A program made the position numbers and the translations under genes. This document shows, piece after piece, positions 5,269 to 59,498 of a stretch of 64,000 nucleotides of DNA. The first letter of the stretch is position 1; each line of letters starts with the position of its first letter. Source of the DNA: Mizuhopecten yessoensis (lineage: Eukaryota); NCBI RefSeq assembly GCF_002113885.1, contig NW_018404865.1:382255-446254 (forward strand), in the 5' to 3' direction. The notes below the pieces were generated by a model that was not told where the DNA came from, ran no database searches, and saw only the letters and a list, made by a program, of their open reading frames with translations.

Positions 5269-5408
5269 TCACATCCCAGGAGTTGTTGAATTTGAGCATG
5301 TATGGAGGTTAATACCCAATTCAAATCCAGCCGGGCATGAGCAGATGTAACTTCCGGGGAGATTCGCACAGATGTGACTGCATGGTAATTCTAAACATTC
5401 ATTAATAT
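5269..5408 (-). CDS. Gene 2 exon 12 (terminal): cbEGF and stop
   Basis: DINECLELPCSHICANLPGSYICSCPAGFELGINLHTCSNSTTPGM*; acceptor tttctgtttcag. Confidence 0.9.
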
Positions 5409-8400
5409 CTGAAACAGAAACATATATAACAATTAGCCAAGGATTGGTAGAATATTCTTCCGAAGCTAGGGCTTTCCGCCGGAGAGGCTGCAATGAATGT
5501 TGCCGGTCTCTTTATGGTAAACGCAATGACTTGATTTATCCAATGAGATTTCTTCATTTATCATGATAAAAAAAAAAAAACTTGTAGACATTACTAGCAT
5601 CTAAGTATCATTAGAGAACTGCAAAACACCTTTTAACGTCGACCTCACTCCACGATACCACGATAACCTGTCACGTGACTTTTGCAAAGCGAATCTTACC
5701 GAACTAACATATGACCCTGACCACGACAAGTACTGTGTCACAAGGTTGATTATTAGTATTGTAAGATGATTTTGATATCATTATTGTGCATTACTGAATT
5801 GTAAAAGATTATACCACCCAGATGAATAAGCGACTTCAAAACAGGCAATAAAATCAAAACACATGAGATTTTTATGACGCAACCATAATTTAGCACAATG
5901 TTTAAGCGCAATCAACAACTTTAATGAGACTAACGCTTAAATATGTACGATTACAGTACAAAGCTTACATTTGACACTTTCGCCGGATACCTACCGAGTT
6001 GACACGTGATCCCCTGGTACCCACGTGGACAGTGGCACCTGTGATGTATGCACACACCTCCATTTCTACACTCAGGAATACACGTTGTGTCTGTTTAAAG
6101 ACGAACGATGACATGTCAAGTTTAAGTATGCATACTATTTAGAAACAAAATAATCAGATTTGCAAAGGTGGACATGTAAACAAATTGTTGAATTTAAATT
6201 TAAGATTGTTAATAAGTCGTTATCTGTTACTATAGTTTGTGTCATCTTGCGTTTGGGAATGGTTCATATTTAGAACAAACCTAACTCGTAATAAAGTATA
6301 TCACAAATTGTAGAAACCTTTAGCTATTCGAACATAATAATTATTTCCAAAAGGAGAGGAGCCAATTTAGGCCTTTCTGTGGCTATCACCGATGGGTTTT
6401 TTTCTTTTTGGATATACATACCTTCGGGTTATGCCGCCATGATATGACATATAATTAAAGTCAAATTGGAACCCAATGCTATATATAAGAGGGTCTAATT
6501 AGGAACCAAAAGAATAAAAACTTTTTTACTAAGGTGCATGTCCATTTTAGAACCTTTCTTCAAAATTTTGGAATATTGTGTAACACTGAAGCTGCGTATA
6601 AGATGAATGACCAATAAAACTAGTGCATAGTTGAAAAGTAGGTCACAGTGACCTCGCTATTTATCAGCTTAATCATGTTATCGATACACTCTATTTTGTA
6701 ACTTTATAGACATAATAACCATACACTATTCTCGCTCACTTGTATTTAGACAATTCTTAACCAAATCTTAAGATTGGGGGTAAGGCCTGACAACCACTGT
6801 GGGAGAGGCCCCGAACGGGAGGACTTGGGCACCCAAACAACAAAACAGCGGTCGTCCCAAACACCACAGGTCCCGGCAGCGCAGGGCTGAGGGATTCGGT
6901 GCTTGGCTATTCCCACTTCATTCGCCGTTACTGGGGGAATTTGGGCGGATGGGTGTGATACTTTCTTAATACTTTTTTCATTTATTTAGAAAAAAAATAC
7001 GTCCATTTATCTGGGAGTTGAAAGTATAATGAACGTACCTCACAGCCCAGTTATGATTAAGATATATTGGTATTTTATGTACTGTTGATCTGGGACAGTT
7101 GTAAAGGCTAGTAAATTGTATATATCCTTTTCCACAATAAACAGTAGTTAGCCAGAAATAAATTGATCTACAATATTAGTATGCGAGATAGCTGCAATGC
7201 AATTCCAGTTACCAGGTATTGCTATGTATTTACTGGACTAGAAGGCCTACATTCTACTCATAGCTATAAGGTTTCCCATCCGAATTGATATATTAGGTGT
7301 GTGTAAGGGGGTGGTGGTATGTCACATCATATTTACCATAATATTATGAGTCAAACTATAACAAAAAAATGAAAGTCTTTATATGCAAACCTTTCTTGCA
7401 ATCATTTAATATTTAACCCCGTTTCAAGAGATTTAGTTGTGATTATTATAAATACAATTTGGTAAGACTGCTGTATGTTTCAAATGTTAATTTAGGCACA
7501 AAAAGTGTATCGTTGATACAATAAAGCCGATAAATAGTGATAGGAGATCCCTCCTTCATTAGTTTGGTCCATATCGATATATTCTCTTCCAGGAAATGAT
7601 ATTTACCAATTTATTTCTAGACACCTGTCTCGTTGGCCAATAAATATTATATCCGAAGTACTTACTGACACACGTCCGTCCGTCTTGTCGAAGTCGACTT
7701 CCGGGCGAGCAGACGCATGCGTACCCACCATGTGTGTTCCGACAGTGGTGCTGACACAGTCCTGAGTGACGGGAACATTCGTCAATATCTGAAATATTTG
7801 GTTTAAAAATAATTCTTAATCGTTTATCTGGTTTCAACATTTGCCCTTGGTTTTTCTGTCTTATTAATTAGCGCGCGAGACCTTCTGCAGCACTTCTGAA
7901 CTTTAGTTTTGACTTCAACTAACTTTTAATGGAATATACTTCAGGTGTGTTTGTATACTAACATTCGTAAATAATGTTTAACAACGCCACACTACTAAAA
8001 CGAGTACTTATGCAAGTTATCATTTTAATATTTTTTATGTTAAAGGAAGGCTTTCTACCCTCCACTTTTCCGAAAAACGTGCAGACGTTGCTCACCCAAA
8101 CCTCCCACATAACACATTGTAAATTTAAGTGGTCTCTATTTCTTTTCGTGTTCTAAAAGAAATAAACTAGTTAATTAATTTGTATCACTGTGTGTGACTG
8201 CGGTAAACTAGTGTTCAGCTACTGAAATAGAAAAACAAAATATTTTAGAAAAAATTCTGGATTTCATTCTGATTAATCGGATTCCATTGTGTTCATTTCG
8301 AAAAAGACACTTTGAAAAGGTTTGGCTGGTGGACGATTTTAAAGAGAGAACTCCGAACACTACAATTTCACTGACCATCTGAGCTATTTTATAATCGACA

Positions 8401-11400
8401 GCTCAACAGTAACAGTTCCACTTTAAATTATAATCCACGGCCCCAGTATTTAACAAAACGAAAACAATTATGATATGATACGGCTTGTACCTTTTACCAA
8501 TGAACTATCAAACGGACATTATACCATCATGCTGGCGATCAAACCGTATCATAACCTGCGTCAAGTTTTAATCCTGGTCATGGTCCCAATTTTTACAAAA
8601 GCGAAAAATAACTACAATAGACTATGCCCGGGTTTGTACCTTTTACCTATGGTTTATAAACGTTCATCCTATTTATCTGGAACTGGATGTCAACCCGTGT
8701 CATGTGAAGTATACCTGTCTGGCAAAATAATCCCTCGAATCCCGCCGCACAGTGACAGGTCCCATCTCGGCAATGACCGCCGTTGAGACATTCAGGTGTA
8801 CATTCAACAGCTGTAATCAAATATGTGACAGATTCTAAAATAATTCTTAAATGTACTAATATCACCTATAACAAAACACACATCTCCTTTCGCGTCCGTC
8901 CGCAAACATAAAATGACCAAATCTACATCTAGACAAAGGTCAAGCTTACCACAATAAAAAGTAATAAGCTATAGAGAGCATACGTTCATTTACTTTATAC
9001 ATGTGTACCTGTAAATATGTTTTCATCTGATATTTACATACATGCATACCTTTACACGTGCGTCCGTCTGCGTTTATGGCACGTCCGGGGGGACAGACAC
9101 AGTGGTAGCTTCCGACCGTGTTCCGACAGTCGTACTGGCAGTGACCCCTCGGTAACAGGTGGCACTCGTTCACATCTGTGATTCATAAACATTGTTTATA
9201 TTTTCATCTGAGAAATATTGAAAGTGGACAATATCGACTATTTCTATTATGTTTTAAAGATTTCGATAGAATGATGTAAATATAGGCTTACTTTTTCTGT
9301 TATCCGAGAACCGGAAATTGGCTTAGTGCGTAGCCATAAATGCTGGGTTAGTCCAAAAAACGAAATGATAGAGACAATATGTGAAATATTTATGTTACCT
9401 AGTTGACAGGCGACTCCTGTGACACCTGGCGAACATATGCATGTACCATCCTTACACACGCCTCCGTTAGAACATTGGGGGTTACATGCCATTTGCAAGG
9501 ACTCCAAACTCAGCCCACAACCGGATGTCTTGTTTTCTGTACAATGATTACAACGAAAATTATCGTAACTTGGAGGGGGAAAAGTAGTCAGTGAGAAAAC
9601 ATTTTAAATTCAATACAATACAATACAAATCCCTGTCCTCATGATTTCGTGTAATTTGAGTAACTGTATGCTAGGATATTTAGAAAAATGTGTCTGATAT
9701 ATCTTTATTGCTTGCAAACGCAATAACATTTTATTGGAATACAATTCTTTTGCGTTCCTGCGCAATTAAATGGGATGTATGCCTCGTGCCAACCGCAGCC
9801 TACCTTTTATTCTAACAGCCTATGACTTAAATCTCACAGATATGAAATGCTTAACAACTAGTCTTATAGTTAAATATTTCCATTTCTACTGAGGTTGGAC
9901 TCCATAAACGAACTACAAGTAAAGTGTATGAGGGGTATTTTTCCATAAACTTTCAAGGTGGCGTATGAATACATCCGCAAAAAACTAGTTCCGTTTTTAG
10001 ATTTTCCACTTAATATAAACAAATTTGAACTTTCAGCAGTATTAGACTAGGTATAACTTGTACTAGTCCGATATTTTAGAAGTTAATAATATCATTAATG
10101 TTCATTAAATTTGTCTCAAGGCCAATCGAGAAAAAATATACTTTGAGTATTATTTAAATTACATCAGCAAACCCTTTCAGCAGACCTAATACATAGGACC
10201 GCCTCCGACCCTCATAATTGATATACATACAACATAACATACCCCCAGGACATCCGGGCCCTACGTGGGACAGCACACATCTGGCACCTCCACCATCGTC
10301 ACTAATGCTGTAGTTATCTTCACAGGGACTCAACGGTACGGCAGATACTACGCGACGGAAGCAATGACAGATATCAATAAATAGGGTTTTACTAATGTGG
10401 ATGACTTAATAATAATCTAGGGATTTCTAATAACAGAACCTGGAACTGCAGATTCCAATAAAAAAGGAAACCGTCAAGTCGACTAAAACGTCCACATTTT
10501 TATTTGTTATTAAAGTAAATTTTGGTAAAGGTCTAAAACACTAGCAATTCACGCACAGTCACGGCGAGAAGTAAAACAGGTGTGCCAGCGCTGGTTAAAA
10601 TTGTCCCGTTGGAATCTAACAATAATTTGAAAACGCAGCCAAGTTCAGAAGTCATCTGTACGATTACCTCCCTTAAATTTCAATTTAACTCCCGAAAAGC
10701 TAGATAAATTGCAATGTAGAACTTGTAGCATTTGTAGCTCACCAAAATGGTTACAATTTATTTAATCATATTTAATAAGTAGTGTTCCTATGTTATATAA
10801 GAAAAAACTGGAGGCGGAAATAGAACTCCCGGAAAGATACATTTGCACTTTTTAGTTATAAAACGCTTTAGACACTAATACTGAAAGTTGTATTAAGAAA
10901 ATTACCAGAACGAATATAATGTTTCATCGTATTTTATCTTACTAGCTCTAATAACTGTATTTAGGTTAATGTATGCATGTTCTTATGTACAATAGTATAA
11001 GAGGTAGCACAACAACTGATCAATTCTACGTCATATCCGAGTCATTTCGGTACATATATAACAACTAATTGTACATACGCTTACAGTGTAGACGAATCGA
11101 CATCGATTTGTGGACAACTCGTACACAGTTTACACCTTTGTGTGCATATGCTTCAGTGGTCATTTGTCTGTTGAAGGTGACAGAGTACATACCGTACTAG
11201 TCATCGAAACGTCACATAAAAAACACTTATTGGTTTTGTAACAAGAACTTTTCATGATAAAGTATAAATATGTTGTTCAACATTTTACTATAAGAAACGT
11301 ATGAAGTGATATTCCCCAGTACCTGAAAGAAACCGATTCCTTTAAAAGAAAATATAGCATTTGATCAAACCTGATAATCCTACGTTTATAAGTAGACACG

Positions 11401-14400
11401 TCATATGTAACCACAGGGGCGGGTTACGCGTAGCTGACAGCTATAATTGGAATTAAAATGGTATCAAAACGGTGCGAGGCATCACAAATTACTCCGCAGG
11501 GGTCGACACTTGTCCGTTAATCCTGGACTTGTAGATTTCAGCAAGGACTAGTGAATCACCTAACCTAACTGGTCCTTTGGACTTGTGAAAAATATGATCA
11601 TAAAATAAGAATATTCCTTTTTTTTAAATCTAGACAACTGCTTAAAATAAGATAAATTGCATGAATATTGGCGAAATTCTCCCCAAAACCTTTACCATAT
11701 TTTTATGGCAGTTGTTATTTTAAGTCCCCTACAGTCGATTAGTTTTGATGATTTGTACTGTAGATCGCGATGTTTCCTTTAAGAAATCTTGGACAAGTTA
11801 CATTGATGAAGGACTAGTAAATTATCTTTTCAACTAGTCCTGTAGACTACCAAGCAAAAACAGTTAGTGTCCAACCCTAGTTAGACTGATTTTTGCAGAA
11901 ATGATTCGAACGTTATGTCATTATGAAGCCGGGTTTGTTGTTTTCTTATTAATCAGTTCGATATTGAATAAATAAAGGGGTGAATATAGAAAAGATCGAT
12001 GAATTAAAGTGGGCATTCCTCCTTCGTCTAACATAAGGAGTTAGACAAGGTCACCGACTATGCCTTATATCGTTTAACTGTATTTTTCTTTTCCTCTTTT
12101 TTATTCAACAACGGGAAAATAGCCCAGGATTACAGAAAAAAACATATTATTATAAGTGTTTTAATAACTATATGTTCATCTTCACAACTGTAAACAACAG
12201 TAATCATGTTGGATATGTACTCCACAGTTATGTTTACTGCTGCAAAACATATATTTGAAGAGTAACTCCCTGTCAATACATCTTCAAACTTTGAGACGGG
12301 TACCTTTACAGTATAATGCAAATATCGAAAGAGGTGGACTTAAACTAGAATAAATATACATATGTATAATTGCTTTACCTAAAAGTGATTTTTTTCTGTA
12401 TTTGACATATTCCAGAAATGATTTCCAGTTTTCAAATGTCATTCCTCGTGAATAATTTAGGTATGCATTTTAATACTAATATAAGTCATAAAAATTGAAG
12501 TTGCAAATAAATTTATGTATGGATATTCCGTCTTTAGCAACTGTGCCCTGTAGCTTGTATTTTGATAGTAAGTGTTTACTTACCTCCAATACGTATACAC
12601 TCTGGAGTCCGGCCTGTCGCCATGAGTTCATACCCATCCGGGCACTTCAATTTCATTGTCCGAGATTTGCATATCTTTTGACCATTTTCAAGTGTCTGAA
12701 CGATATAGGCCTCCCCACATAACCCATTATCAGTTTCCATGACAACACATCGTCGCCCTTCATCATCTATGACCTGGATCTCCGCTATCCCACACGAAAA
12801 TGGACCCTCTCTCTTCCGGGGTACCTGAGTTTTCCAGGAGACTAAGGGTTGTTGTGTTGTCGGGGATATATCGCCCAGACTTGACGTAGAAGAGTGAAGA
12901 CAGGTGAATTCGTGATCTTTATGACTCCAAGCGAGTTCAAGATCATTCCCACACATAATGGTTGTCTGTGTGACTTCCACGCAGCCAAGTTCAGAGGTCA
13001 ATTGTACGATTACCTCCCGTGGAGAACATATCCATTCCGTTACATCGACAGTGGTGAAATCACAGAGAAACCCAGTTCGTTTTTGGGTCAATATTTGACC
13101 TCGGGGACATCTCGTGCCTATGTCGTCAGGGTTACCATCAAAGTCTCCAAATTTCTTGCTGGTATCGCCGTTGTTATTATTTGAGTAACCAGGGTTCATA
13201 TATGTATTGTCGCGGTTCCTTTCCGAATTGCCATCGTTTCTATTCGAGTTTTCATGGTTATTATTCGAGTTATCAGGATTGTTTTGTGAGACACTTCGAT
13301 TGTTTCCATGGCTACCTCGCGAACGATACTGGCACATACGACCACTGTCCGTGAACACTGCCTCTTGTCCCAGAGGGCAAGGTTCCTCACTCCTGTCATC
13401 ACTCGTACCCACTGGCTGACATTCCCCAAGTGATATCCTGAACCCCACAGGACAGTCGACGACACTAACTTTGAGAGTAGGGTCCTTGATACATCTCTGG
13501 CCGTCCGTTGTGTCCAATGGGATGAACCCAGGAGAGCATATCCGTGATGATTCCCGGGTAGTGGGGACATTACCATAGTTACACGTATATCCGGTACGAG
13601 AACGTACGAGCTGCTGACCCGGAGAACAAGTAGGGATGGGAGATTGTTGCTGACCCGTATATTGGCACACCCTTCCCACCGGCGTGTCGACGGGTTCAAG
13701 CCCATCGGGACAAGGGGCCGAGGTCGGTGAACCTACGCATCGCCATCCAGAAGACGTTAGCACTCTTGATTTCCCAGATGTACATGCAGCTGATATTTCC
13801 TCGCAAATATATCTCCCCATGACCTGTGTCAGACTCGTACCTATCCCACAAACAGGCCGGACTTCACCAGCGGCTGCACACATGGATCCCATACCGGACC
13901 TAGTGATGAGCTGCCCTGGTGGACACGCTGGGGGTGGCGTTGTCTGCGTTCCCTTATACTGACAGACAACGCCACCCAGTACGTTGACGGCTACCTGGTC
14001 AGCAGGGCAGACACCTTGCTGTTGGACAGGTTCAATACGTGATGTCGGAGTAGGAGTATGGTCACGGGAAATTGTATTGACAATCACCGGTGAAGGGTTA
14101 GTTTTCATTGTTGGAGGGATAGCGTGGTGAGATATATCTGGCGGGATTGAACTCCTTGTCATCTCGGGAAGGTCAGAACGCCTCGTTACTCCAGGAGAAA
14201 GGTCAGACACGTCCTCCTCACCGACGGCCTGACAGTATACTGTAGCACCCTCCACGCGCTGACGGTAGCCCGGAGGACATGGCTCTGATGATATAGCCTC
14301 ATCATCTGTCCCAAAAGATCTAATATATGATGTACATAAATCGTCCCGACATATCCGTTCTTGTCCCCGTCGCTCTCCTGCACGGCCTTCCTGTTTTCCC

Positions 14401-17400
14401 CTCCCTTCCCCCTTTGGTCGGGTAGCCGGGTTACTGGCCCTCTGTCGGCCTCGTAGCTTGTTAAACTGCATAACAAATGTTTTGATCTTATCTTCAAAGC
14501 TAGTTCTTTCCGTCGATTCGATAGCTGAAATTGTCGAGGACGTCCTAGGGATGTAATCAACAGGAAGAGGCGTTGTCGATTTTGGTGTTTCCGATTCATG
14601 ATGAGTCGACGTCCGGTTCATTCTCATGCGTGACCCTTTGGATTTACTATTTTCTACAACGTTCTTCTTACGTAACTTTTTGTTTTTTCTCTGTTTTCTA
14701 TTTTTACGTTTTTGCTTATTTTTTCTTCTACGATACGGCGTTTTTGGTAAGGACTGATCTGATTGCTCAATTGGGTGTAACGGGGTCTCTTTGATTATTC
14801 TCCTCCCCTCGTGAAGTGGATTGACTTTCTTTGACAATGTCCCCGTGTTCCATTCTGTAATGTCTAATCTGTTGTGACCTTTTAACCTCTCTATGTCATC
14901 ATTGACTCCTGCACGTGATTTTTGAATCAACTGCTGTGTCTTTCGTTCATCAGTGTGTCTTCTGTCTTGGTTCCAATCGCCAGTAATTGTTTCTACTCTA
15001 AATGACGGTCGGGGTAGAGCTGGCCTAGACGCGACCGCTGGGCGCAGTTTTGGAGATTTAGGTCTATTATGAACGGTTTGTGTACTTTCTGTGGTCGTGT
15101 AATGCTCTGGTGCAGCCTCGTTGTCGAATTTGGTAAAGGCGCTGTCTGGCTGTAAGCGGTGTGATACATCGTTAAATACAGAGGGAGTACCGGGACCGTT
15201 GTACCCTGTTTGACACCCAGATCGTGGACACGGATAAATTCCCCGGGAAATCTCTGTCAACGTTGACATTTCCTCCTGGAAGAAGGGCATCCTTTCATTG
15301 AATTGGGCCGTTTGTAAAACGAATTGTGTATTTCGTGTACGTGTTTGACGGTCATGCACACATTCATCACTCAAACAAGGACTGAGACTCTGCACGATTG
15401 GATCTAATGGTCGAGTAATGTCCGGATACATTTCTGGTATAAACTGACATGCTCCGGATGTACAGGGCTGATTTCCATCAACCTCGCCCGGGGCGGTATT
15501 ACAGTCACGTCCCAAACATGGAACGGGCTGAAATTCAGTGTTCGTGAATTCTGGAAACAATGCCTCTCGATGATCGGGCGCTTCGTGAGGAAAAGTTGGA
15601 TTACAATCGGGACCCCTACATTCTGGAAGGATAGGAAATTCTTCACCAACAGTCGGGATTTGTGGAACTGCTACGCATGGCTGAGCATCCGTTCCACACG
15701 GTACTTCTGGTCCACAGGGTTGGTTCTCCAATCCGCACGGCGGATTTGATCCACATGGCTCTCTATTCGATCCACACGGTAATTCGGAACCACAGGGTTG
15801 AGATTCGGAACCACATGGAGGAGGTGGCATGTGATCTACGGAAAATGGAATTTCCGGCGCATTTGTATCACAAGGAGAGGAACTTGGTACACACGGGGAC
15901 TGGGATCCAAAGTCTACGTGTGGAGAAGATCCACAGGGTACGCCGTCTGAACCACATGGCCGTAGCGGTGGAGGATGTACCACAGATGGTATGGCGTGAT
16001 ACGAAGGCGTTCCGCAGGGCTGGCCTTCCCCACATGGTGAATCAACATCAACTTCGGATGTAAGCTTGAGGGGGTGAATTCCACAGGGTCGACCTCGTGC
16101 ACGTGAGCCTGATCCGCACGGGGAGTTACCTACGGAATTACAGAAAAGATCGTGTGGCATACACCACGTATACAGCCTGTACAGTACGAGTGTTTCCTCG
16201 TTATAATTATCACTGTATGGCATAACCATTATATATTCCCTAACAAATTGATGATATTTTAAACAACTACGGATATGTTGGTATAATTGCTGACGTAATA
16301 ATTATAAGGACGTCACGGTTGGTACATTGGGCATCGCCGACGCTCTCAGGAAGATAACTGTTCTTCTTTTAAACGAACACAACACATTAAATAATTTTAA
16401 TATGAGGCTGAATTGTCAATTTGTCCTATCTTTAGAGATAAACTGAAGTGATTTGGAGAATGGCAAAATGTTGTTAATCCATTATCGGTATACTTGTCCT
16501 GGTTGACTTTTTAAAGTTTCCGGATGACTGAGGTCGACTCATCATATTGTCTGTGATACAACAAGAATTAAGATTTGTTAATTGTCGTCCTTTCGGGGCG
16601 AAAAGACGAAACAACGAAATGGCACTTATCAGCCACCGTATGTGTGGCTTACAAAAATTGTGTTACCTCCGTCATGGGCAACCCCTATATGTGACTATAG
16701 TCATTTAATCTCCGACAAAAGCGCCCCCTGTATTTGACTTAGAGTAGACATGTTGTCATCGACATGAGAGTCCCCTGTACATAAGTAACGATAATAATGT
16801 AATATCCGATATGAGCGCCCCCCGGATGTGACTTACGATAATCGTGCAGTCGGCGACATGAACGGCCATTGTCGGTCAGCGTGAACCCCCGGAAGCAGGT
16901 GCACATGAAGCTTCCGACCGTGTTGATACATCCTTGGTAACACTTCCGGCGTCCCTCACGACACTCATTCACATCTATGGGCACAGCACAAACAGTAAAG
17001 TACATTGTATTATTGCTGTAACAGTGTTCGCTGTTATTGAACTGATCTGTAATTGTATTCTTGTAAGTAATTGACAAAATACATTACTATAAACAACAAC
17101 TGAGTTAAAAGTAAATATGTAATTTTGTCAATGAAAATAATTAAAAAAAGAGATTACGCTGCCATTCAGTTTTGTTTTCAACATGGCATATAAAAACAAT
17201 TTTTAAATAACGCTAAACCTTGATAATAATGATATAATTATTATAATAGATTTAAAATAAAAACGGGATTTCATTCATTTATATAATGTGTATGTTTGAA
17301 TGAAATTGCATGTATGTCACAATTACCAAACACAAACTCGATGAAGAAACTAACCCATTACAAGTACTGATGAACGCTTACATTGAAAATGTGTAACACA

Positions 17401-19426
17401 TTAGGTTAAATTTAAACATACTTTAAATACAGGACGTACGTTTCTAATGAGTGTATATATCATTATCTGGCTTGTGTACACAGCCATCTGTAATTGTCTG
17501 GTCACCTTAACTACGGTACAAGGACAGAGAGTAGTGTTACATGTGCGTCCGTCAGGGATCGAACCCCCGATCTCCAGGTTCCTAAGTCGGACGCTCTACC
17601 ACTAATTAGCTAAAGGCAAACTCCCTCTACCTTGATGCTAGAAGGCGACCGTAATCAAATGTACAATTTAAATATGCCACACAAGTATACAAGTACATAT
17701 CTGTAAGAACACTGACGAGTTTCTGCATGTTTATCTTTTACTTCTCTTCAATTTTTTCTCATTTCACAAACAAACTTATCACAGTTGTGGGTAATAGATA
17801 GTGTTACACTGATATCAAATATTGTGCTATTTTACCAAGACAAATCAAAAACAAAAATGGCAGATTTTATATGTAACGCTAAATGGTGAAATATTAATTT
17901 ACCTCGACAGGATCGTCGATCAATTATTGCGAAACCAGACATACAGGTGCATTGTGGGATACCCTGCACTTCTTCGCATCTCTGTTCACATCCAATGTGT
18001 TCACAAGTAGACAGCTGGACCGGAAGAACGGATCTCGCATTTATAGCTGTTGGCGTGTCTACTACATGACAAGAAGATTTCACACTTCCGTCAGGGCATG
18101 CGCATAGGTTAGGGGATGTACATACTCCGGAACCACATCCTCTACATATGGCTGTAACGGATAAAGTTTATACAAAATTAAACAATACAGGACAGTTGTA
18201 TGATCGGTCGGATTAAACAGGTTTTTAAGTTAAGTCAGGTTATATTTACATGACCTTGGGATGCATGCAGTTTGAACAAGAGTTGAAGGTCTATTTTAAA
18301 AACGTATCTAGACTAGCAATTTTGAACATTCATGCCATGCAAATATACATTAATATATATGCATACACAGAAACCTTCTTAAAGTTTTAGTTTATAAAGG
18401 TAACTGTTCAACACAGTTCCAATCTGCATATACAGATATATAAATAGAAAAGGACCTAGCTAAGGATTAGTAAATACAGGTATTTTTATTTTGTAGTTGA
18501 ATGCATTCAGTAGTACTAGGGCGGAAGTATACAGGTATCCAGATACCAAAGGTTTACATTATCCTGGAAGTTCCATTTCCGAACATCTCTGTTTTAGAAT
18601 TTTCACTGCATTACAGTAGAGTATTGACCTGATATGATATATATCTAGTTTTTAGGGGAATCAGGATTAGTGTGTCGGGTCAATGGCGTAATATACAGAC
18701 TCTGGTTAGAATGTATCAATAAATTCTTATAACTCTTTAATAATTTTATTAATGTTGGCGTCATTCAGGGGTGGATTTTAGTTCATTCCATTAAATATAT
18801 ATATAAGTATGTTGAAAAACATTCCAGAACAGTTAAAACTGCAATAAGACGTACATTCCCCAACCTAGAGGGGACTGATGATAAATCCTAGATTTTAAAA
18901 TTAACGAGTGTTCTTGGAGTTAGCTCCCTTGCATTGCGAATTATCTTAATGCTCACGTGTCAGACAGAGTCGACTATCCCCGGTCCGGGACCAGCCAGGA
19001 CAACAGCGCCCGTCCACACCTCCGCACTCGTGTTGACCCCTGTTAGTTACAACAGCTCAAACAACATTAACAGACTAAAGACGACATATTGCGAAGTAAA
19101 ACTGAGAACATCGAGGTCAATAAAAGCATTGGAACCGAATTGAATTACTGTACGTTCTTCAGTATTCAATTTATCATTTTGTTAATCTCAACAAGCCATT
19201 CAAACATAAATTGTTGGAAAATACAATAAATACGATTTGTATTCACTGGCATTCTCAAATTATGATATTTTAAATTCATAAATTAAAATTGATATTTCTG
19301 TATGGCCAAAATCCATGAATCATCTGTAGAAACGACTCACCTGCGAGTTCGCAATAAGGGGTACGTCCCTCCTACACTCTTCAATGTACAGACCACTGTT
19401 AAAATCGCCATTATCGCCTCCGCCAT
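5269..19426 (-). CDS. Secreted FUN/EGF/cbEGF matrix protein with a giant Cys-repeat insert (fibrillin/VWCE-like N-terminus); 12 coding exons, ~1641 aa
   Basis: Exons 19341-19426, 18957-19039, 17903-18151, 16837-16974, 12584-16129, 10243-10347, 9399-9536, 9050-9175, 8715-8810, 7666-7788, 5995-6090, 5269-5408. All introns are GT-AG, phases match (2, then all 1), total 4926 nt with no internal stop. Confidence 0.88.
5995..6090 (-). CDS. Gene 2 exon 11: short EGF
   Basis: NTTCIPECRNGGVCIHHRCHCPRGYQGITCQL; 96 nt; not in ORF track. Confidence 0.92.
6781..6940 (-). pseudogene. 28S (LSU) rRNA 5'/D1-region fragment, ~160 bp, inside intron 10 of gene 2
   Basis: Reverse complement reads ATTCCCCCAGTAACGGCGAATGAAGTGGGAATAGCCAAGCACCGAATCCC...TGTGGTGTTTGGGACG...CCCAAGTCCTCC..TCGGGGCCT...TGTCAGGCCT, the conserved eukaryotic LSU 5' sequence with several substitutions; a GC-rich island in an AT-rich intron. 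Confidence 0.85.
7666..7788 (-). CDS. Gene 2 exon 10: cbEGF
   Basis: DIDECSRHSGLCQHHCRNTHGGYACVCSPGSRLRQDGRTCV; 123 nt. Confidence 0.93.
8715..8810 (-). CDS. Gene 2 exon 9: short EGF
   Basis: AVECTPECLNGGHCRDGTCHCAAGFEGLFCQT; 96 nt. Confidence 0.93.
9050..9175 (-). CDS. Gene 2 exon 8: cbEGF
   Basis: DVNECHLLPRGHCQYDCRNTVGSYHCVCPPGRAINADGRTCK; 126 nt. Confidence 0.93.
9399..9536 (-). CDS. Gene 2 exon 7: short EGF
   Basis: ENKTSGCGLSLESLQMACNPQCSNGGVCKDGTCICSPGVTGVACQL; 138 nt. Confidence 0.9.
10243..10347 (-). CDS. Gene 2 exon 6: one more C-x14-C repeat
   Basis: VSAVPLSPCEDNYSISDDGGGARCVLSHVGPGCPG; 105 nt, phase 1-1; not in ORF track. Confidence 0.8.
11497..11879. mobile_element. Non-autonomous DNA transposon (MITE-like, hAT-type ends)
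   Basis: Imperfect terminal inverted repeats CAGGGGTCGACACT ... AGTGTCCAACCCTA with internal GGACTAGT/ACTAGTCC motifs; no clear TSD. Confidence 0.5.
12584..16129 (-). CDS. Gene 2 exon 5: 3546-nt exon with Pro/Cys repeats, a basic tract, an Asn-rich tract and C-x14-C repeats
   Basis: Body of ORF 12576..16229; acceptor ttttctgtaattccgtag|GT, donor G|gtaagt; phase 1-1, 1182 codons. Confidence 0.9.
16837..16974 (-). CDS. Gene 2 exon 4: calcium-binding EGF
   Basis: DVNECREGRRKCYQGCINTVGSFMCTCFRGFTLTDNGRSC; 138 nt; donor gtaagt. Confidence 0.93.
17541..17615 (-). mobile_element. tRNA-like SINE head / pseudo-tRNA
   Basis: Reverse complement CCTTTAGCTAATTAGTGGTAGAGCGTCCGACTTAGGAACCTGGAGATCGGGGGTTCGATCCCTGACGGACGCA has Pol III A and B boxes, but the acceptor and anticodon stems pair poorly. 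Confidence 0.6.
17903..18151 (-). CDS. Gene 2 exon 3: two EGF-like domains
   Basis: PICRGCGSGVCTSPNLCACPDGSVKSSC...CEHIGCEQRCEEVQGIPQCTCMSGFAIIDRRSCR; 249 nt, phase 1-1. Confidence 0.92.
18957..19039 (-). CDS. Gene 2 exon 2: FUN (fibrillin unique N-terminal)-like 4-Cys domain
   Basis: GQHECGGVDGRCCPGWSRTGDSRLCLT; acceptor taacag, donor gtgagc; 83 nt, phase 2->1. Confidence 0.88.
19341..19426 (-). CDS. Gene 2 exon 1: signal peptide and furin-type site
   Basis: gccATGG Kozak context; MAEAIMAILTVVCTLKSVGG-TYPLLRTR(R); donor CAG|GTGAGT. Confidence 0.85.
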
Positions 19427-20299: not shown

Positions 20300-22445
20300 A
20301 ATTCTACTGTATGACCCTGTATGGCCTGAATGTGTTGATTGGTCGTTTAGTCTACTACTATATGACTCTGTATGGCCTTAATGTGTTGATGGGCCGTTAA
20401 GATGTGCCGTTAAGTATATGGTATAATCCTGTATGGTATTAATGTGTTGAAGGGCCGTTAAGATGTGCCGTTTAGTTTACTGTATGGCCCTGTATTGTCT
20501 TAATGTGTTGATGTGCCTTTAAGTCTACTTTATGAATTGTATGGACTTAATTCATTGATGTACTGTTAAGTCAACTGTATGACCCCGTACAGACTTATTG
20601 TTTTGATGTGCCGTTAAGTCTACGGTATGAACATGTGTGGAGTATGTGTGTTAATGTGCCGTTAAGTTTACTGTATGATATGTACATACTTAATGTGTTA
20701 ATGTACTGTTAAGTCTTCTGTATGATATGTACATACTTAATGTGTTGATGTGACGTTAAGTCTACTGTATGATATGTACATACTTAACGGCACATCAACA
20801 CATTAAGTATGTCCATATCATACAGTAGACTTAACGGCACATCAACACGTTAAGTATGTACATATCATACAGAAGACTTAACGGCACATCAGCACATTAA
20901 GTATGTACATATCATACAGTAGACTAAACGGCACATCAACACATTAAATATGTACATATCATACAGAAGACTTAACGGCACATCAGCACATTAAGTATGT
21001 ACATATCATACAGTAGACTAAACGGCACATCAACACATTAAATATGTACATATCATACAGAAGACTTAACGGCACATCAACACATTAAGAATGTACATAT
21101 CATACAGTAGACTTAACGGCACATCGACATATTAAGTATGTACATATCATACAGTAGACTTAATGTGTTGATGTGCCGTTAAGTCTATTGTATGATATGT
21201 ACATACTTAATTTGTTGATGTGCCGTTAAGTCTACTGTATGATATGTACATACTTAATATGTCGATGTGCCGTTAAGTCTACTGTATGATATGTAAATAC
21301 TTAATGTGTTGATGGGCCGTTAAGTATACTGTATGATATGTACATACTTAATGTGTTGATGTGACGTTAAGTCTACTGTATGATATGTACATACTTAATG
21401 CGTTGATGTGCCGTTAAGTCTACTGTATGATATGTACATTCTTAATGTGTTAATGTACTGTTAAGTCTTCTGTATGATATGTACATACTTTATGTGTTGA
21501 TGTGCCGTTAAGTCTACTGTATGAAATGTACATACTTAATATGTTGATGTGCCGTTAAGTCTACTGTATGATATGTACATATTCAATGTGTTGATGTGCC
21601 GTTAAGTCTACTGTATGATATGTACATACTTAATGTGTTGATGTGCCGTAAAGTGTACTGTATGATATGTACATACTTAATGTGTTGATGTGCCGTTAAG
21701 TGTACTGTATGATATGTACATATTTAATGTGTTGATGTGCCGTTAAGTCTATTGTATGATATGTACATACTTAGTGTGTTGATGTGCCGTTAAGTGTACT
21801 GTATGATATGTACATAGTTAATGTGTTGATGTGCCGTTTAGTCTACTGTATGATATGTACTTACTGAATGTGTTGATGTGCCGTTAAGTCCACTGTATGA
21901 TATGTACATACTTTATGTGTTGATGTGCTGTTAAGTCTACTGTATGATATGCTCATACTTTATGTGTTGATGTGCCGTTAAGTGTACTGTATGATATGTA
22001 CATACTTAATGTGTTGATGTGCCGTTAAGTCTACTGTATGGCCCTGTATGAGTCTACTGTATGGCCCTGTATCAGTCTACAGTATGGCCCTGTATGAGTC
22101 TACAGTATGGCCCTTATGGACTTAATGTGTTGATGTGCTGTTAAGTCTACTGTATGATATGCACATACTTTATGTGTTGATGTGCTGTTAAGTCTACTGT
22201 ATGATATGTACATACTTAATGTGTTGATGTGCTGTTAAGTCTACTGTATGATATGTACATACTTAATGTGTTGATGTGCTGTTAAGTCTACTGTATGATA
22301 TGTACATACTTAATGTGTTGATGTGCTGTTAAGTCTACTGTATGATATGCACATACTTAATGTGTTGATGTGCCGTTAAGTCTACTGTATGCATACTTAA
22401 TGTGTTGATGGGTAGTTTAGTCAAAAGTATGATCCTGTATGACCT
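20300..22445. repeat. 47-bp tandem satellite (~40 copies) with an internal inverted block and degenerate edges
   Basis: Unit TGTATGATATGTACATACTTAATGTGTTGATGTGCCGTTAAGTCTAC; reverse-complement orientation between ~20782 and 21163. Confidence 0.95.
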
Positions 22446-51400: not shown

Positions 51401-54400
51401 AGGGGCCAAAAAGGTAAAAATCCAAATTGGTCTTAAAGATCTACTGTTGAAGTTAAAAGGGAGATAAATATACAGCATTTTGATAGAGCGTCCTATCTAG
51501 CTAACATAAGCCACTCTCAAGCGCTTTACAGTACATATATATACAATCTAATACAATGAATACAATTAGCATATACATTAATCAATACAATAAAGAGGAA
51601 TTCGCAGACAAACTCTTTAATACTTGTCGTCAATGTACAGAGCACTTGTTAACTTCAAATCAGTAATAACAAAAATATGTTCATTGTTAACCCCGACACA
51701 AGGAATATCCTTGATATCAATGTCACGGCAAGGTCACGGCAAGGTCACGGCAAAACATCGGGGACTAATACATCTACCAACACAGTCCAACTGTTTGTAT
51801 CTCGAAAGGTGTAACACAACACATAAAGGTGTAACACAACACATAAAGGTGTAACACAACACATAACTTCTAAGACTCGTTTCATAAAATCTCATATGAA
51901 ATGAAAACTCATTTAAGATCCTCTATATATGTTCATACATTCTTTATTCTGTAAAAAAAAACTCACCTACAACGTTTATATTAATTTTTCTTATCTGTAT
52001 CGTTTTCTGTGTATAAATATCACAAGGGGTGACGTGTCTAAAAAGACCATTGTATAAACAGATTAGTTTTTATGTGAAATATCATCTGTATATAACTATC
52101 ATTTGTCTGTATTGAAAAAGTATCTCTTTTAGAAAGACTACCCAAATATAAGGCAGTTTATCACTACATAATTTGGTTGAAATAACTCAAATGTTATTTG
52201 CTATATGATAAAATTCATGAACCACTTGCTGTCTTTTTCCTTTTGTGGTATACATGTTTAAGTTTATATTCAACTTTCTCTGTTAAAATAATATTTAACA
52301 ATCCCGTTTAAAATTCCAGTGTCAAGATAATGTTTATATTTGGATCACTCATCTTCACTAATGAATATTTAGTCATTGATTAATTAAGCGAGCAGGTGTT
52401 TCCTAACGTTAATTGTTAATAACTGATATAAAATCTATTCTGATCATGTGTATAATTCTAGTGCATAATGTTATGGTTTCTTCCTTGACTTTTGATTGAT
52501 ACAATATCATAAATTTTATATTTATATCTGTTCGATTGTACCTCAGATATGATTAAGAAATATGGAATTTGCTGATCATTAGTCTATAAATACAAAGTTA
52601 AACATCCGTTAAGGATATATTTGATTTCCTCATTTAATAAACATTACGACAATGAATGTCATTGTCTTGTGTCATGTTTCGATCTAGATCTTCCAGACGT
52701 TGACAAACATTGTGTATGTTGTAAGTTGGTTGTCTATGCATTCCTGCAAACAACTATCCCAGCATTACCTTTATAAAATAGCTTCTTGCATTATCAAAGT
52801 TTTGGAATAGAACTGAAATCATTATTTAAGCAAAAATATAAATAACAATAAAGTTGTTTCTATGCGAAAAAGTTTGTTAGGTTTGAATGCAGAGTGCTTT
52901 CCCTTTAGAGTGCTCTCCCGTCCGAGTTGTGATTACTCCTTAAACGGAGACTTTTTGCCATATTACCTCCAACGTACATCTTTTTATAGAGATTTATACC
53001 CTTCCTTCCTTTTTCAATTTTCTTTGACTTCTTTACCATGTACGTATTTGTCTCGCATTCATTTTTGTTATCACAATTTAATTTCATTTACCCTTCTGTC
53101 GCAAAATAAATAAGTTATGGATACATGTTTCCCTCTTTTATATGTAGGGGAATATGTATGAATAAATCGTTTATGTTAGTTTTCCTTACATTGTACTAAT
53201 CCGAACGCAACCCTAAAAAAAATTGAATATTTTTGAAATTGTCTGTTATGTTTTACTAGTAAAGAATAATTAAATCTGTGATTTTCTGTTCAAACGTGCA
53301 TAAAAAAAGTAAAAATGTCACTGAACTACTTATTGCCGGTCAAGTTAGACTGAGAGATCCAAAACGTTAGGCACATTATATATTCTAGTTTGCATGTAGG
53401 TGAAAATATATGGCAATATCTATCGGAAAATATTGATGATATGTTTTCAACAAAAATAACCAGGCAAGTTAAGAAAGTTTGTCTTGGGTGAATTTATAAA
53501 GGCAAATATAGAATATACATCCAAATAATTAAAATAATGTCTTTGCCTGTATGCCGTTATGCCTTTTTGCTTTTTTTTAAAATCAAATAACACGTATACA
53601 ACGTGTGTTAGTTTGGTAGGTTCAAGTGCCCATATTGGGTCATACTGTCGTTAGGAGTTCTAATATATCTTCCGGAGGCGAGGTAGCCTGGTGGTAGGGT
53701 GCCGGGTTCGTGACCGAAGGGTTGCGGGTGTGAGTCACGTCACGGCTCTGTGGTGTATCTTTGAGCAAGATATTTTACTCCAATTGTTCCAGTCTACTCA
53801 GTTGTATATGAGTACGTGGTTGGACAGTGCTAGAATTGTTGAATGCTAGCTGTGAGCGCCGAAATGGCCGCACCGGCTGTATGCTTCTCAGGGAGTTGAG
53901 AAATATATTAGGCGGTTGCAAAGGCCCTATAACAACGGATAATAACTTGTGAACTGCTTTGAGACGACCTACGACCTAGGCTGTGCTTAAGCGGTATATA
54001 AGAACCTCAAATTAGTAGTAGTAGTAGTATTTTGCGAAAGGTGTCGTTATATATGTCAAGTTTTACCTATCTGCTGTCGTTGCAGGTTTCGCCTCTGTCG
54101 ACTGCCAGTGGGGATTTGGACTCGGGAAAGGTGGTGACTTGGACTGGCTCGTGTCAAATATGGGAGAACTGGATAAGTTTGACCTAAGTCAGAATCGCGA
54201 TAAATCTGGTGGTATAGCTATCCCAAAACAACACCAGACACCAGGACGAATGGCAATAGGAAGGCGCTATGGACGTTTTATCCAGTCTGCCGATGACAGC
54301 AGTGAGCCAAGTGACAGCAGCAGCAGCAGCAGCGAAGAAATATCTGTCGGGAATGGTGATACTATATACAGTAGATTTCTAGAAAATAGACAAAACAATA

Positions 54401-57400
54401 ATAATGATGGATTGGACAATCAACAAGGCGGAGGAGAAGGATACAATAATGAAGGCGAGGAACATGTTTACAATGGTGAAACCGGAACTGAAAGTGAAAC
54501 TCAAACCGGCGATAATTGGAACTTCAATGATAACTCACAAAATCGACAGTCAGGATCAGAGCATTCCGCGTGGCACAGAAATGGAGGAAATGGAGAGGGA
54601 TCACAGTATAATGCACAGGAAATGCAGAGTAATCAAGGTGTTACCTACGATAAGCGTAGCCCGCAAGCTCATCCTGGTCAGCAAGGCCGAGCAGGCCAGG
54701 GAAGGCAGCAAAGTCAACAGGGTCAACGCGGAGGTCAAGGTCGGTCAGGTCAGCATAGATTTCGTAACTGGGCGGATTATCAGCGTCAACAAGAAAGGAA
54801 CAATCTAGGAGAAGAATACGAGCGTGAAGACGTGACACCAATAAATAACTCTAACGGAGGTCACGGGCAAAGTGGCTCACAGGGTCAAGGTCAAAACGAA
54901 GCTGAGGATAGAATGCCCCACGCTGGTAATCAATCTCCAGCATCAAATGGCTTTGCTTATGAAGCTATTGAACCAGAAGATAGAACAACTCCAGCTGTGA
55001 CCTCAAACAAGAAGACAACACCTTCACAACAGGAATATGAAGCAGAAGATGTCACAACAAGCGCTCCGGGTGGTTCAGTCACCAGTGGACGAGTTACCTT
55101 TCAACGGAGTACTACAGAGGAATATGAAATGGAAGGAAGCAGGCCAACAACGTCTGCTCCAAAGGCAAACAAAGAAAATTATAATACGTGGGAGAGTGGG
55201 ATGAACCCTAACGGAGGTAAACCCATTCGGACAGGACCGGGTGGCAGAGCACCAGGTCCCAACTCCCGTGGTAGATGGGTAAATATAGGCCAGATGCCTT
55301 ATCCACGAAAGGCAAATAATGCTGTAAAAAGAAATGAATGGAGTGCATATGCTAGCTCAGTGGATGGAAGTAGTCCAGGAAACGGAATTCAACCTCGGCA
55401 ATCATCGGTAGACGTTAACCCTAACAAGAGACAGCCGACTCCAAAACAAGGCAGGATTGCTGAACCGGTAAATAACAGGCAGACATTGTCAGGGAATGGA
55501 AACAGTCCAGGTCGACAAGGACTTACAGATACCTGGGTAGGGCCCGATCAGAATCCAAATCAGAAACCATCAGAGAATGCGGCGGTGGGTTCATGGTTGG
55601 ATACAGTGTCTAATACACAAATGAATCTACCTAGTCAACCAATGAAACCTAATCCGGCGAATAATAATCAACAGCCAAAACAGGAGCCATTAGTACGACC
55701 ATCAGACCGTATTCCTTCTCATGCTAGACCAGCGTTCCAAAGCGGTCGTCATCCTGCGTCCGTGAGACCCATGTTCCCTAATCGTCATAACCAAATAGCC
55801 AAACCAACCTCTCCTAACGGGCAGAGATTACCACCAGTGAAGTCTTCTTCTTTCCCTGCTACACGTAACAAGCCATCGACACCTACCAGATGGAGGCAAC
55901 AACCGATACGACCAGCACAACCAAGTGGAAGAAAGCCGGAACAAACGGCGCAGAGACCATCGTGGACAGGTGGTTCTCCAAACAATGTACGACAGTTACC
56001 TCAAGACGGCTGGATCGATCCACCAGTTTGGCAGGACAAGACGCCTAGGCAACCAATCCAAAAAACGAATACAAAACCTAAAAATCAACCATGGAATAGT
56101 GGTCGAATTAGTAACGTACCGGGACCGGTCCAACATCATCGTAAGCCTTTGGGAGGGCGGGACTTTCAAAGGAAACCATGGAACGGTAAAAACTTAAATA
56201 AGCCTAATAACCAGCCGAGGCAGCCAAAACATGTAATGAAGAAACCGGAAAATGATATACTCACTTCTACACAATCAACATGGAGAGGTGTTCCTGTGTC
56301 GCCAACACTGAATATTATTGACCCGAAATTTTCTGGTCAGATGCCTACACGTAGAGGTAAAAATCCACCAGCATGGACAAACCCGCCATCAGACTCAGCA
56401 GGTAGACATCCGGTTAATCGTGACAACATTCCAAATGAGAAACCATCGGGCTCTATTCCAAACCAAAGGGATCAACCAGTTGTCAACGACATCAACAAGA
56501 GTGTACAACCATCAAAACCTATTGACAGTGGTAAACACATGTACCCTAATGATATCTCTAAAAATCCATCCTGGGGAGGAGACATCATCAGTCCATTCAG
56601 TGGAGATTTTGTCACAGAGAAACCTATGGTAGGCGGTACCAAAGTCAGTAAGAGACCCGATACCGGTCAGGTGACAGTTGCATTGAAACTCCACGTTTCT
56701 GATGCTAGTGTGCCTAAGTTGCAAGTCAATGATTGGGGGAACACCCCTCAACGTGGGGACTTTGTCTACAAACCAAAACCGGCCACAGTACCACAGGGAC
56801 ATAAACCTAAGGGCAGCAGGAACACCAATAGGATAAATACCCCAGACCGCTTTCACGCCAACCCGGATAAGCCAACTTATCGAGACATAGAGACCAGCAC
56901 GTTCTCAGTCATTAATCCAAATTCAAAAACATCTCATACTGGTCCCGCCATTGTCCGACCTACAAAGAACAACAGACGCCCATTGAATCAGCAAAACAGA
57001 CGTCAACCACCTGTTAAACAAGAACCAGTAAAAAATAATAATGAACATCTCAAACAGATTAAGAATTTAATTAATAAACAACACCCGGCTACAGTAATTA
57101 AACAATTCATCGAAATGACGACGGCGAATAGCTTTGGCGTTTCTGGTACACAGGAACACAATAGTCTTATCACGAACATTGATGACACATTATCATCAGA
57201 TAACCCTCAGATTATTAACCTTCTCAGAGACATAGCACGGGCGAACAAACGAGCAGGTACCGGTCACCAACAGCAAGGGGTTCCACAGAACGATGTGATA
57301 GCTAAAATGTCGTCAACGGCAGTATTAGGTAATCGTCCTAAAACGTTAGATATGGCTTCAAGTCATGGAAGCATTGTCGACGGTGTTGACGCCGAGGCTC

Positions 57401-59498
57401 TTCTCAACAGTAATGCCAATCTACACGGCATCATAAACAGCAAGAACCCTGGATTATCGAAACCATCGGCTGCTAATTCCATATTAACTACAAGGTTAGA
57501 GAGTACAAAAAATAAGCCACCTTACCCAGGATTCCCTGCAGCAGGAAATGATGATGCAGTGAATTTCGGCGAGCTAAGCATGACAGTTAAACGTGTTAAT
57601 GGAGAGCCAAGACCGGTGGAAAATGTGGAGCTTGGCCAACTAAAGAATGTAAATGCGGGTCAAGGATCCAGTAAAAATGTGATCAATATTAAAAATGGCC
57701 GTACTATAGCCCCGGTTAATCCGACACCTGAATCAGTAACACCAAAGTCATGGTCGGAATATAACCCCGACCCATGGCAGAAGGGTGTTAACACCAAACC
57801 AAGCACACAATCAAATATTCCAGGCTCAGCAGCAGGAGGACAAAACGGGAACTACACAGCTTCAAGAGATAAAGGAGGTCGACAGAATGTATCGGGCACC
57901 ACAGAAAGACAACAGACCGCGCCAGTAGTTCAAAGACAGTTTCAAACAGTATTAACGGCACAAAGGAGGAGACAAGGAGGCGGCGGTGTCTGGAGAAGTG
58001 CTGCTGGTGGAGAAGGGGCCTGGAAGGTAGCGGCGAGGAACGAGGCCAGAGAGCTGGTCTTGGAGAAGGAGGGACATTGGAACTGTGAGTAATATGTGTG
58101 TCGTCTAAAATATGGTGTGGAAACGTACATTGCATGATTTTTATTGATTTTGCTGAACATTGCCCACAAATTCATTCATAAAGTGACAGACATATTTAAG
58201 CATAAAACTGTAAATCACTTAACTTCCCCGAATATCTATTATTGTGAATTTGTTTTTGAAAAAGTCATTAATAAAAATTGAATGGAAATTCAATTCATGA
58301 TTGATTCCTTCCATATGCTTTTGAAAAAAATAATTAATTAAATGCTCGATCAAATCTCGGAAACTGATAACGCATTATGAGTGGTTTACAGTTTAATAAG
58401 GTAGGTAATATATCAATCACTTTTAAATAGCCTTTTATCCACAGCACAATTGTTAATACATTTCTCCTATTTGGCTTTAATTAGGAGACTTTCCTTATGG
58501 GAGCAACACAAAATTTAAATGCGCTTTTGCCTTTTCATGTATTTACTAGCAATTGCGATCTGCATTTCAATTTATTTATGTTGCTTCTGAAAATGAACAT
58601 AATGAGAGTTTTCTTGCTTTTGAAATCGCAAGGCTAATGCGACCAGCGCACGCAAAGCAGGCACCAACCACAAGCGTTGCATAAGTTTAATAACTTCACC
58701 TATTAATACTTATCCTATAACTCTGCATGCATGCTCCCTCTAACCACCCACTCTCTCCCCTCCCCAGCGGTCAATATCACCACAATAGGCAAGAAGAGCA
58801 ACATATGTCCTGTCTATGACGTCACATATCAGGAGAACGCCGTTATCCTCTCCACCAGACACAGCACGTGCAAAATGTGAGTTAACGGCTACGCGCTAGT
58901 GTGTAGGTGAATAAAATCAATTGTATTATTTAGAGACGATTGGAGGTTTTTTTCAGGGATTATATTTGACGGACACAATTTAAATCCCATAGTCCAACTT
59001 CCGGTTTTGTGAGGTTTCCAAGTACCATGTGTAATGTTTCGATGTCTTTTCAGTTTCTGATGTTGTCCTTTCGTTTTAATGTCGTTTTAATTTCGAGTTC
59101 AAGTTTGATCTTCGTGCGTTGTTGACATTATAGGATATTTTGTAAAATAATTGCAAAACAAATGTAACCTTATACTAAACGACACAGAATGTGTAAAATC
59201 AGGTTAGTTATATGTAAAATAGCATAAAAGTGCATCCTAGTGGGATCACGAGTTACATAAAGTATGCAAAATGTGCATTCACTTAATTATTAGTGTAATA
59301 ATACAAACAGATGTTATACATCATAAGGTTGTTGTTAATATAATAATGAATGCAAATAAACTATTCGGTGCACTCGAGATTGATCGATTGTTTAATAAAA
59401 TGAATGTTTTTGATTTATATAAATGGAGGTTTATTGAATTACTGAGCGTCATTATAAGTGTAAAAACTAATATATCATATTCAAGTGTCAGTATATAC

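Follow-up and report, generated by a model that had tools for sequence, protein, structure and literature searches.

A conserved array of C-x14-C units, predicted to form beta-hairpins, in an unstudied FUN-EGF protein of the scallop Mizuhopecten yessoensis

The gene and its two-cysteine array

The window analysed here, 64,000 nucleotides (nt) of the scallop Mizuhopecten yessoensis (contig NW_018404865.1, positions 382,255 to 446,254), carries on its minus strand a gene of 12 exons, with GT-AG introns and phase 1 from exon 2 onwards, whose product contains a long array of two-cysteine units. Each of the 12 exons translates into the RefSeq protein XP_021347973.1 (1651 residues, labelled 'uncharacterized'). 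An earlier note on this stretch had described 17 such units, 14 of them with exact C-x14-C spacing, and all 14 that it quoted are found in the minus-strand frame where it had placed them. The open frame at 16301-12579 (-) runs for 1241 codons and holds 16 cysteine pairs in its last third, with the 17th pair in the next exon; 16 units thus lie within exon 5 (14279 to 12597) and one in exon 6 (10324-10277). The two cysteines are 14 residues apart in 14/17 units, with spacings of 10, 15 and 16 occurring once each. Within the 607-residue stretch taken for a shuffle test, which has 34 cysteines, 15 gaps between successive cysteines are exactly 14 long (14 units and one linker), compared to a maximum of 7 in 20,000 shuffles. 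At the DNA level the array is not repetitive, as had also been claimed: Tandem Repeats Finder reports nothing within it, and pairwise identity between units is ~33% for the inner 42 nt and ~19% for the inner 14 residues. On these grounds we rejected an artefact of recent tandem duplication. The proposed consensus C-P-x-G-x8-G-x2-C stands with regard to its second glycine, which is found at -3 from the second cysteine in 65%, and can be refined at position +4, which is mostly Gln (37%) and not Tyr or Phe. The unit profile contains few His or other metal ligands.

Following the protein from its N-terminal side, unit 1 (14232..14279) is a C-x14-C unit of GY type; it is the most EGF-like of all and is the first unit in the orthologues too. 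Units 2-10 (13332..14009), eight with spacing 14 and one with spacing 10 at 13454-13419, are joined by linkers of 6-14 residues and are modelled as hairpins by AlphaFold. They are followed by a 74-residue linker rich in Asn, Asp, Gly and Ser (13110..13331), the length of which differs among orthologues, and by units 11-16 (12597..13109), four of which have spacing 14, the others having 16 (12953-12900) and 15 (12719-12669). Unit 17 again has spacing 14. The joints 12584/10347, 10243/9536, 9399/9175 and 9050/8810 are all present in spliced contigs of four RNA-type runs from three studies, and one 5013-nt contig covers all four joints; because the joints are seen in these runs, the array belongs to a spliced transcript. 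A 40-nt copy (93% identical) of part of unit 12 (12979-13018) lies in intron 5 at 10633-10672; its flanks are unmatched and it is absent from the spliced contigs. Unit 12 is also the unit that is best conserved relative to Ylistrum (93% at the amino acid level).

The remaining exons place the array within a secreted, EGF-containing protein. Exon 1 (19341..19426) encodes a signal-peptide-like N-terminus and a furin-type site, RTRR, which is the sole R-x-K/R-R sequence in the scallop protein; the RefSeq model starts at an upstream ATG at 19456. Exon 2 (18957..19039) encodes a FUN-type four-cysteine domain matching the N-terminal structure of fibrillin-1 (2m74, E 4.9e-9). Exon 3 (17903..18151) provides an EGF domain of the type that comes first in fibrillin (PF21364, E 2.9e-5, slightly below the curated cut-off), a linker and a second EGF domain, and exon 4 (16837..16974) a calcium-binding EGF (cbEGF) domain (PF07645, E 9.3e-9). 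Exon 5 is very large (12584..16129; 3546 nt). It starts with Cys/Pro micro-repeats (16127-15213), acidic in character, in which P-C-G...P-C doublets are followed by C-x4-C; similar blocks occur in every full-length orthologue seen, although in the orthologue P0008 the block is near the C-terminus instead. Directly before unit 1, at ~14700-14330, are a Lys/Arg patch with a net charge of +21 within 45 residues, an amphipathic helix of the type F-E-D-K-I-K-x-F and the marker C-R-D-D-L-C, an invariant C-x4-C sequence, all conserved in orthologues. The short helix is a candidate oligomerisation seed. The 16 units complete exon 5, and the joint 12584/10347 connects them to exon 6 (10243..10347) with unit 17. 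Exons 7-12 (5269..9536) encode three pairs of EGF and cbEGF domains, as indicated by the spliced joints and by Pfam matches in orthologues; exons 7, 8 and 9 are at 9536-9399, 9175-9050 and 8810-8715, and exons 10, 11 and 12 at 7788-7666, 6090-5995 and 5408-5272 plus stop. The order in the protein is therefore signal peptide, RTRR, FUN-EGF, EGF, cbEGF, Cys/Pro micro-repeats, Lys/Arg patch, C-R-D-D-L-C, array and three EGF-cbEGF pairs. The GenBank/UniProt model OWF53031.1 is out of frame after exon 8 (9050 onward), with the four C-terminal EGF-type domains missing; the correct tail is given by RefSeq and the RNA contigs. The GenBank label 'VWC and EGF domain-containing' simply reflects the best hit.

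Elsewhere in the window, an open reading frame of 1317 codons at 54139-58092 (+) is of low complexity, with an abundance of Asn, Gln, Pro and Gly and no Pfam match; it probably represents a single large exon that belongs to another gene. Another open frame at 961-2 (-), which exits the window, has B-box-like Cys/His and coiled-coil features and appears TRIM-like by eye. A satellite array of 47-nt repeats occupies 20460-22430, its orientation flipping internally near 20780 and 21160, and two intronic segments (11038-11223 and 11521-11592) with very high contig depth in the RNA-type runs and loose ends are interspersed repeats.

Conservation and predicted fold of the unit

Orthologues are present in Ylistrum, Argopecten, Pecten, Solemya, Haliotis, Mercenaria and Babylonia as well as in several transcript or metagenome contigs. 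Scallop-only profiles retrieve the Solemya and Haliotis proteins at E ~1e-29 and the reverse search is likewise successful; when the Haliotis array was used in a word search, it matched nothing but itself. The spacing, which the earlier note supposed to be under selection, is conserved in both bivalves and gastropods: it is 14 in 19/19 units of Solemya, 16/17 of Haliotis, 14 of the first 15 of Babylonia and, in two further orthologous sequences, 18/18 (P0010) and 16/18 (P0011), and the Mercenaria array keeps it likewise. Linkers, on the other hand, range from 2 to over 100 residues and unit number from about 15 to 45+ (about 45 in P0008), while unit length is constant. Argopecten lacks one whole unit, both cysteines having gone together. 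Since the spacing is kept in Solemya, Haliotis, Babylonia and Mercenaria while the linkers vary, the unit is real and old, and the scallop units with spacings of 10 and 16 look derived because they are spaced 14 in P0011. None of the 29 coding differences among the four RNA-type runs affects a cysteine and none is an indel; 7/16 are silent in units vs 2/13 in linkers, although these are small numbers.

The suggestion that no existing Pfam family describes this module is borne out by a scan of the mollusc arrays, in which nothing scored above threshold, and a PHROGs scan of the scallop array was equally negative. NCBIfam was run on the look-alikes described below, and no family covered the unit. 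Sequence and profile searches of the PDB with unit, three-unit and bacterial-unit alignments gave no match below E 0.3, and we consider the sushi and antibody entries among the results to be chance. DUF4789, DUF5874 and CBM_14, with ESM feature scores of 0.75-0.77, were discarded since these are inside the chance range and no Pfam match accompanies them.

We obtained AlphaFold models for three-unit windows (78 rows in the alignment) and for nine units (16 rows). Both models agree with the string of beta-hairpins that had been proposed, and show the hairpins as beads on flexible linkers: each x14 unit is predicted to consist of two strands of 6 residues joined by a turn of 2, and the stretches between units are coil. 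Mean local confidence (pLDDT) is 67 and 70 and the predicted TM-score (pTM) 0.27 and 0.23 for the three-unit and nine-unit models, respectively. The first cysteine precedes strand 1 and the second is inside strand 2, the same placement as in the minor sheet of EGF domains. As the models gave no sulfur-sulfur distances, we infer the disulfide within each unit. Of the three outcomes by which the note would have been refuted (a Pfam match, other cysteine pairings in a model, loss of the spacing in orthologues), none turned up, with the reservation that the models do not show the pairing. Fold searches gave little: Foldseek ranked EGF arrays top, weakly (best E 4.5e-4, TM about 0.1-0.27), VIA-align returned nothing for the three-unit model and, for the nine-unit model, hirustasin alone at Z 2.5, with none above 2.5, and nothing significant was found in BFVD and Atlas.

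Likeness to EGF loops, bacterial fibres and other cysteine-rich proteins

The earlier description of the unit as a 'half-EGF' is partly supported. Like the C5-C6 part of EGF and cbEGF domains (PF12662), the unit is secreted and has a C-P-x-G turn, followed by a short predicted beta-hairpin that the second cysteine would close, and the mollusc unit profile aligns to cbEGF C5-C6 at 90% in HHalign (score 18, compared to 5-11 for column-shuffled controls). Loop length and the residues typical of calcium-binding domains do not fit. The C5-C6 loops of the cbEGF domains in the orthologues are 12 long in 19/19 cases, and those of fibrillin and LTBP mostly 10-13, with only 3/259 being 14 long. The residue at +4 is Gln in 37%, Tyr in 14% and Phe in 7% of units vs Tyr in 40% and Phe in 34% of cbEGF loops, so that G-Q stands for G-Y/F, and an Asp two residues after the second cysteine is found in 9% vs 78%, the D-I-D-E sequence being absent. 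C1-C4 are also missing, linkers are free and there is more than one module per exon. With two cysteines per unit and no EGF Pfam match in the array, a six-cysteine EGF domain (paired 1-3, 2-4, 5-6) is not present; cEGF (PF12662) reaches 12-16 bits (E 0.015-0.16) on unit 16 only, under the cut-off of 26.6. According to the note, human VWCE may have one similar segment before its first cbEGF; none of the searches returned a VWCE sequence.

Because the claim of a new module depends on the absence of relatives, a large profile search was made, and this revealed an occurrence that the earlier note had missed. With the unit profile, 152 proteins were retrieved, of which about 30 are of mollusc type and some 60-85 are other secreted ones that are mostly bacterial-looking (one is named Polyangiales). 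In the bacterial-type proteins the unit reads C-x2-G-Q-V-L-x4/5-G-x-W/F-x-C, is as long as in molluscs and is arranged in tandem. In P0009, which is on a contig with bacterial neighbour genes, about 21 units precede a Peptidase_S74 fibre chaperone. In P0041, coiled-coil-like shaft repeats are interposed between the units; when genome contigs were searched with P0041, relatives of its shaft repeats came up, and the unit itself was found at just one new locus, with three units, in a Magnetococcales metagenome-assembled genome. Overall, S74 terminates 4/85 look-alikes, and a sub-threshold match to the N-domain of Bdellovibrio MAT proteins is present in 5/85. MAT proteins are trimeric fibres (PMC10769870). 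The paper describing them gives no description of a C-x14-C unit; relatives of MAT/S74 fibre proteins bear it in tandem with the G-Q...G pattern. HHalign relates the mollusc unit to the bacterial unit at 97% (score 31) and the bacterial unit to EGF at 4%. A hidden Markov model (HMM) made from bacterial sequences only gives 11-53 bits on mollusc arrays vs maxima of 6-11 for shuffles with fixed cysteines and at most 5 for fibrillin and LTBP. Since it was the mollusc profile that retrieved the bacterial set, the likeness seen in both comparisons is partly circular. Taken singly, mollusc units are intermediate, scoring 0.6 on a bacterial and -1.6 on an EGF matrix, and they differ from bacterial units, in which V-L is preferred at +5/+6 and W/F at -2. 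With a motif of 16 residues, these data do not separate descent from EGF, a common origin with the bacterial unit, and convergence on a hairpin geometry that is favoured. The profile search also returned a separate small family of metagenome sequences (P0044, P0073 and P0128), very rich in Lys and Arg, with C-x14-C units and short linkers, and seven proteins of 60-180 residues with one or two x14 units of C-P-P-G-Y type (P0037, P0040, P0057, P0066, P0111, P0116 and P0134), which are likely prokaryotic or viral.

The head of the scallop protein, a furin site, a four-cysteine FUN domain with CC-x-GW and then an EGF domain, is of the FUN-EGF type described for fibrillins, LTBP-1L/2 and VWCE (PMC3794157), and cbEGF domains are another shared feature. 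Its body of ~1200 residues differs, consisting of Cys/Pro repeats, the basic patch and the array. Neither the eight-cysteine TB domain nor the VWC domain was matched in exon 5 or in full-length orthologues, so the protein is by definition neither a fibrillin nor VWCE. A general matrix role is favoured by the orthologues in Solemya, Mercenaria, Haliotis and Babylonia. Solemya and Mercenaria have no adult byssus, and a role in the byssus is disfavoured because the gene is present in both as well as in gastropods. Two byssal proteins, Sbp5-2 and Sbp9, are likewise secreted cysteine-repeat proteins of scallops. Sbp5-2 has 14 two-cysteine motifs and forms extensible fibres strengthened by disulfides; its sequence in the supplement, inspected by eye, has short C-x4-C and mixed spacings, no C-x14-C run and no EGF ends (PMC9117251), and it is not among the identified sequence or profile matches of the array. 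Sbp9 consists of 49 EGF and 2 Calx-beta domains (PMC6244088). Identity with either was rejected, given the different cysteine patterns and the presence of the gene in gastropods. Apicomplexan oocyst wall proteins (COWPs) are similar in being secreted, with regular cysteines (every 10-12 residues, in six-cysteine repeats) and a proposed structural role in the wall (PMC12548878); the type I/II repeat was rejected as the cysteine pattern is unlike that of the array, and no COWP was identified among the profile hits examined.

A matrix tether and its alternatives

Our preferred explanation, to which we assign a probability of about one half, is a furin-processed, mollusc-wide matrix tether with a FUN-EGF head, a cbEGF tail and, between them, internally stapled hairpins that are spaced by flexible linkers and associate with partner chains. 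The array would be the central spacer of a secreted, furin-trimmed extracellular matrix protein of bivalves and gastropods. Each C-x14-C unit would fold alone into a 6+6 beta-hairpin shut by one disulfide between its own cysteines, and the units would be beads separated by linkers that can be of any length. Binding ends would be formed by the FUN-EGF head and by the three EGF-cbEGF pairs of the tail, and molecules may join head to tail by analogy with fibrillin-1, the FUN-EGF head of which binds C-terminal cbEGFs and heparin (PMC3794157); the Lys/Arg patch might bind polyanions. The predicted hairpins contain beta-branched hydrophobic residues, and nothing in the same chain is fixed beside them. 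They would most likely pair laterally with hairpins from partner chains, so that a filament or mesh, beaded and stretchable, would result. In favour of this explanation are the constant unit length next to variable linkers and unit numbers, the joint absence of both cysteines in Argopecten, the coding differences that spare every cysteine, the isolated hairpins of both models, the fibrillin-like head and the spread of the orthologues. Gene structure, splicing, conservation and unit boundaries are observed directly and the hairpins are predicted. The disulfide pairing, the self-association and the mechanical role are what we infer, as is the 'extensible or self-assembling fibre' of the earlier note. 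Several points count against this explanation. The AlphaFold models are single chains of moderate confidence, and their low pTM may mean poor modelling instead of independent units. In addition, no description was returned when the literature was searched by accession, by name and by type of motif, and the scallop protein and the searched orthologue accessions are uncited.

The bacterial look-alikes suggest that the unit could instead be a parallel-trimer 'knot' as in the shafts of bacterial surface fibres, with three mollusc chains in register as a beaded rope and the module shared by homology (ancient or transferred) or convergent. The tandem units in bacterial-type proteins, some with S74 or weak MAT N-domain matches, their position before S74 in P0009 and between shaft repeats in P0041, the trimeric state of MATs (PMC10769870), and the HHalign and bacterial-only profile scores all point this way. 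We nevertheless regard this as unlikely, given that the likeness is partly circular, with per-unit scores near zero on both matrices, and that a fibre marker is missing from most bacterial hits. The mollusc protein itself has no collagen or long coiled coil, and no S74 match was found by Pfam in scallop exon 5 or in orthologues. The PDB searches found no solved structure of the bacterial unit, and the T4 foldon, the register of which the unit may resemble, was not retrieved by a PDB profile search. The more specific proposal of an undescribed disulfide-stapled trimerisation hairpin common to bacterial fibres and the mollusc protein, which would make the latter a three-chain animal rope with extensible linkers knotted at 15-45 points, is slightly more doubtful still. 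Another possibility is that the units are C-terminal subdomains of EGF, amplified after loss of C1-C4, and act as monomeric beads that bind glycan, chitin or another matrix protein, with no self-assembly. The HHalign score for EGF, which is not circular, argues for this, as do the sub-threshold cEGF match on unit 16, the Foldseek ranking, the GY-type first and penultimate units that score best on the EGF matrix, and the EGF domains that flank the array. Set against these are the spacing of 14, the loss of Tyr/Phe at +4 and of the following Asp, and the location of the units in one giant exon instead of phase-1 EGF exons. An EGF-loop HMM also scores the arrays no higher than shuffles, although the length mismatch penalises such a model. 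Taken together, we find this origin improbable. Finally, COWPs (PMC12548878) and the disulfide-strengthened Sbp5-2 fibres (PMC9117251) are precedents for cysteines that form inter-chain disulfides or bind metal to harden a cuticle- or wall-like network, and the upstream Cys/Pro micro-repeats could cross-link. For the array itself this is very improbable: the fixed distance between cysteines within a unit, the free linkers and the joint loss of both cysteines fit an internal bond, and the scarcity of His and other ligands does not favour metal binding.

The unit is a real and old repeat module that none of the libraries scanned lists, and a variant of disulfide-hairpin repeat arrays; the FUN-EGF protein that carries it is unstudied. 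With 16 residues it is small enough to synthesise, so that pairing and oligomer state are directly testable. If the unit does trimerise, this would explain an unannotated repeat of many bacterial surface fibres and would provide a minimal disulfide-locked oligomerisation module for biomaterials. For molluscs, the repeat family is absent from the scanned libraries while its unit length is kept across bivalves and gastropods, and the host protein belongs, with fibrillin, to the small FUN-EGF group. Its combination of variable unit number and linker length with a fixed unit length is the design expected of a tether of tunable length.

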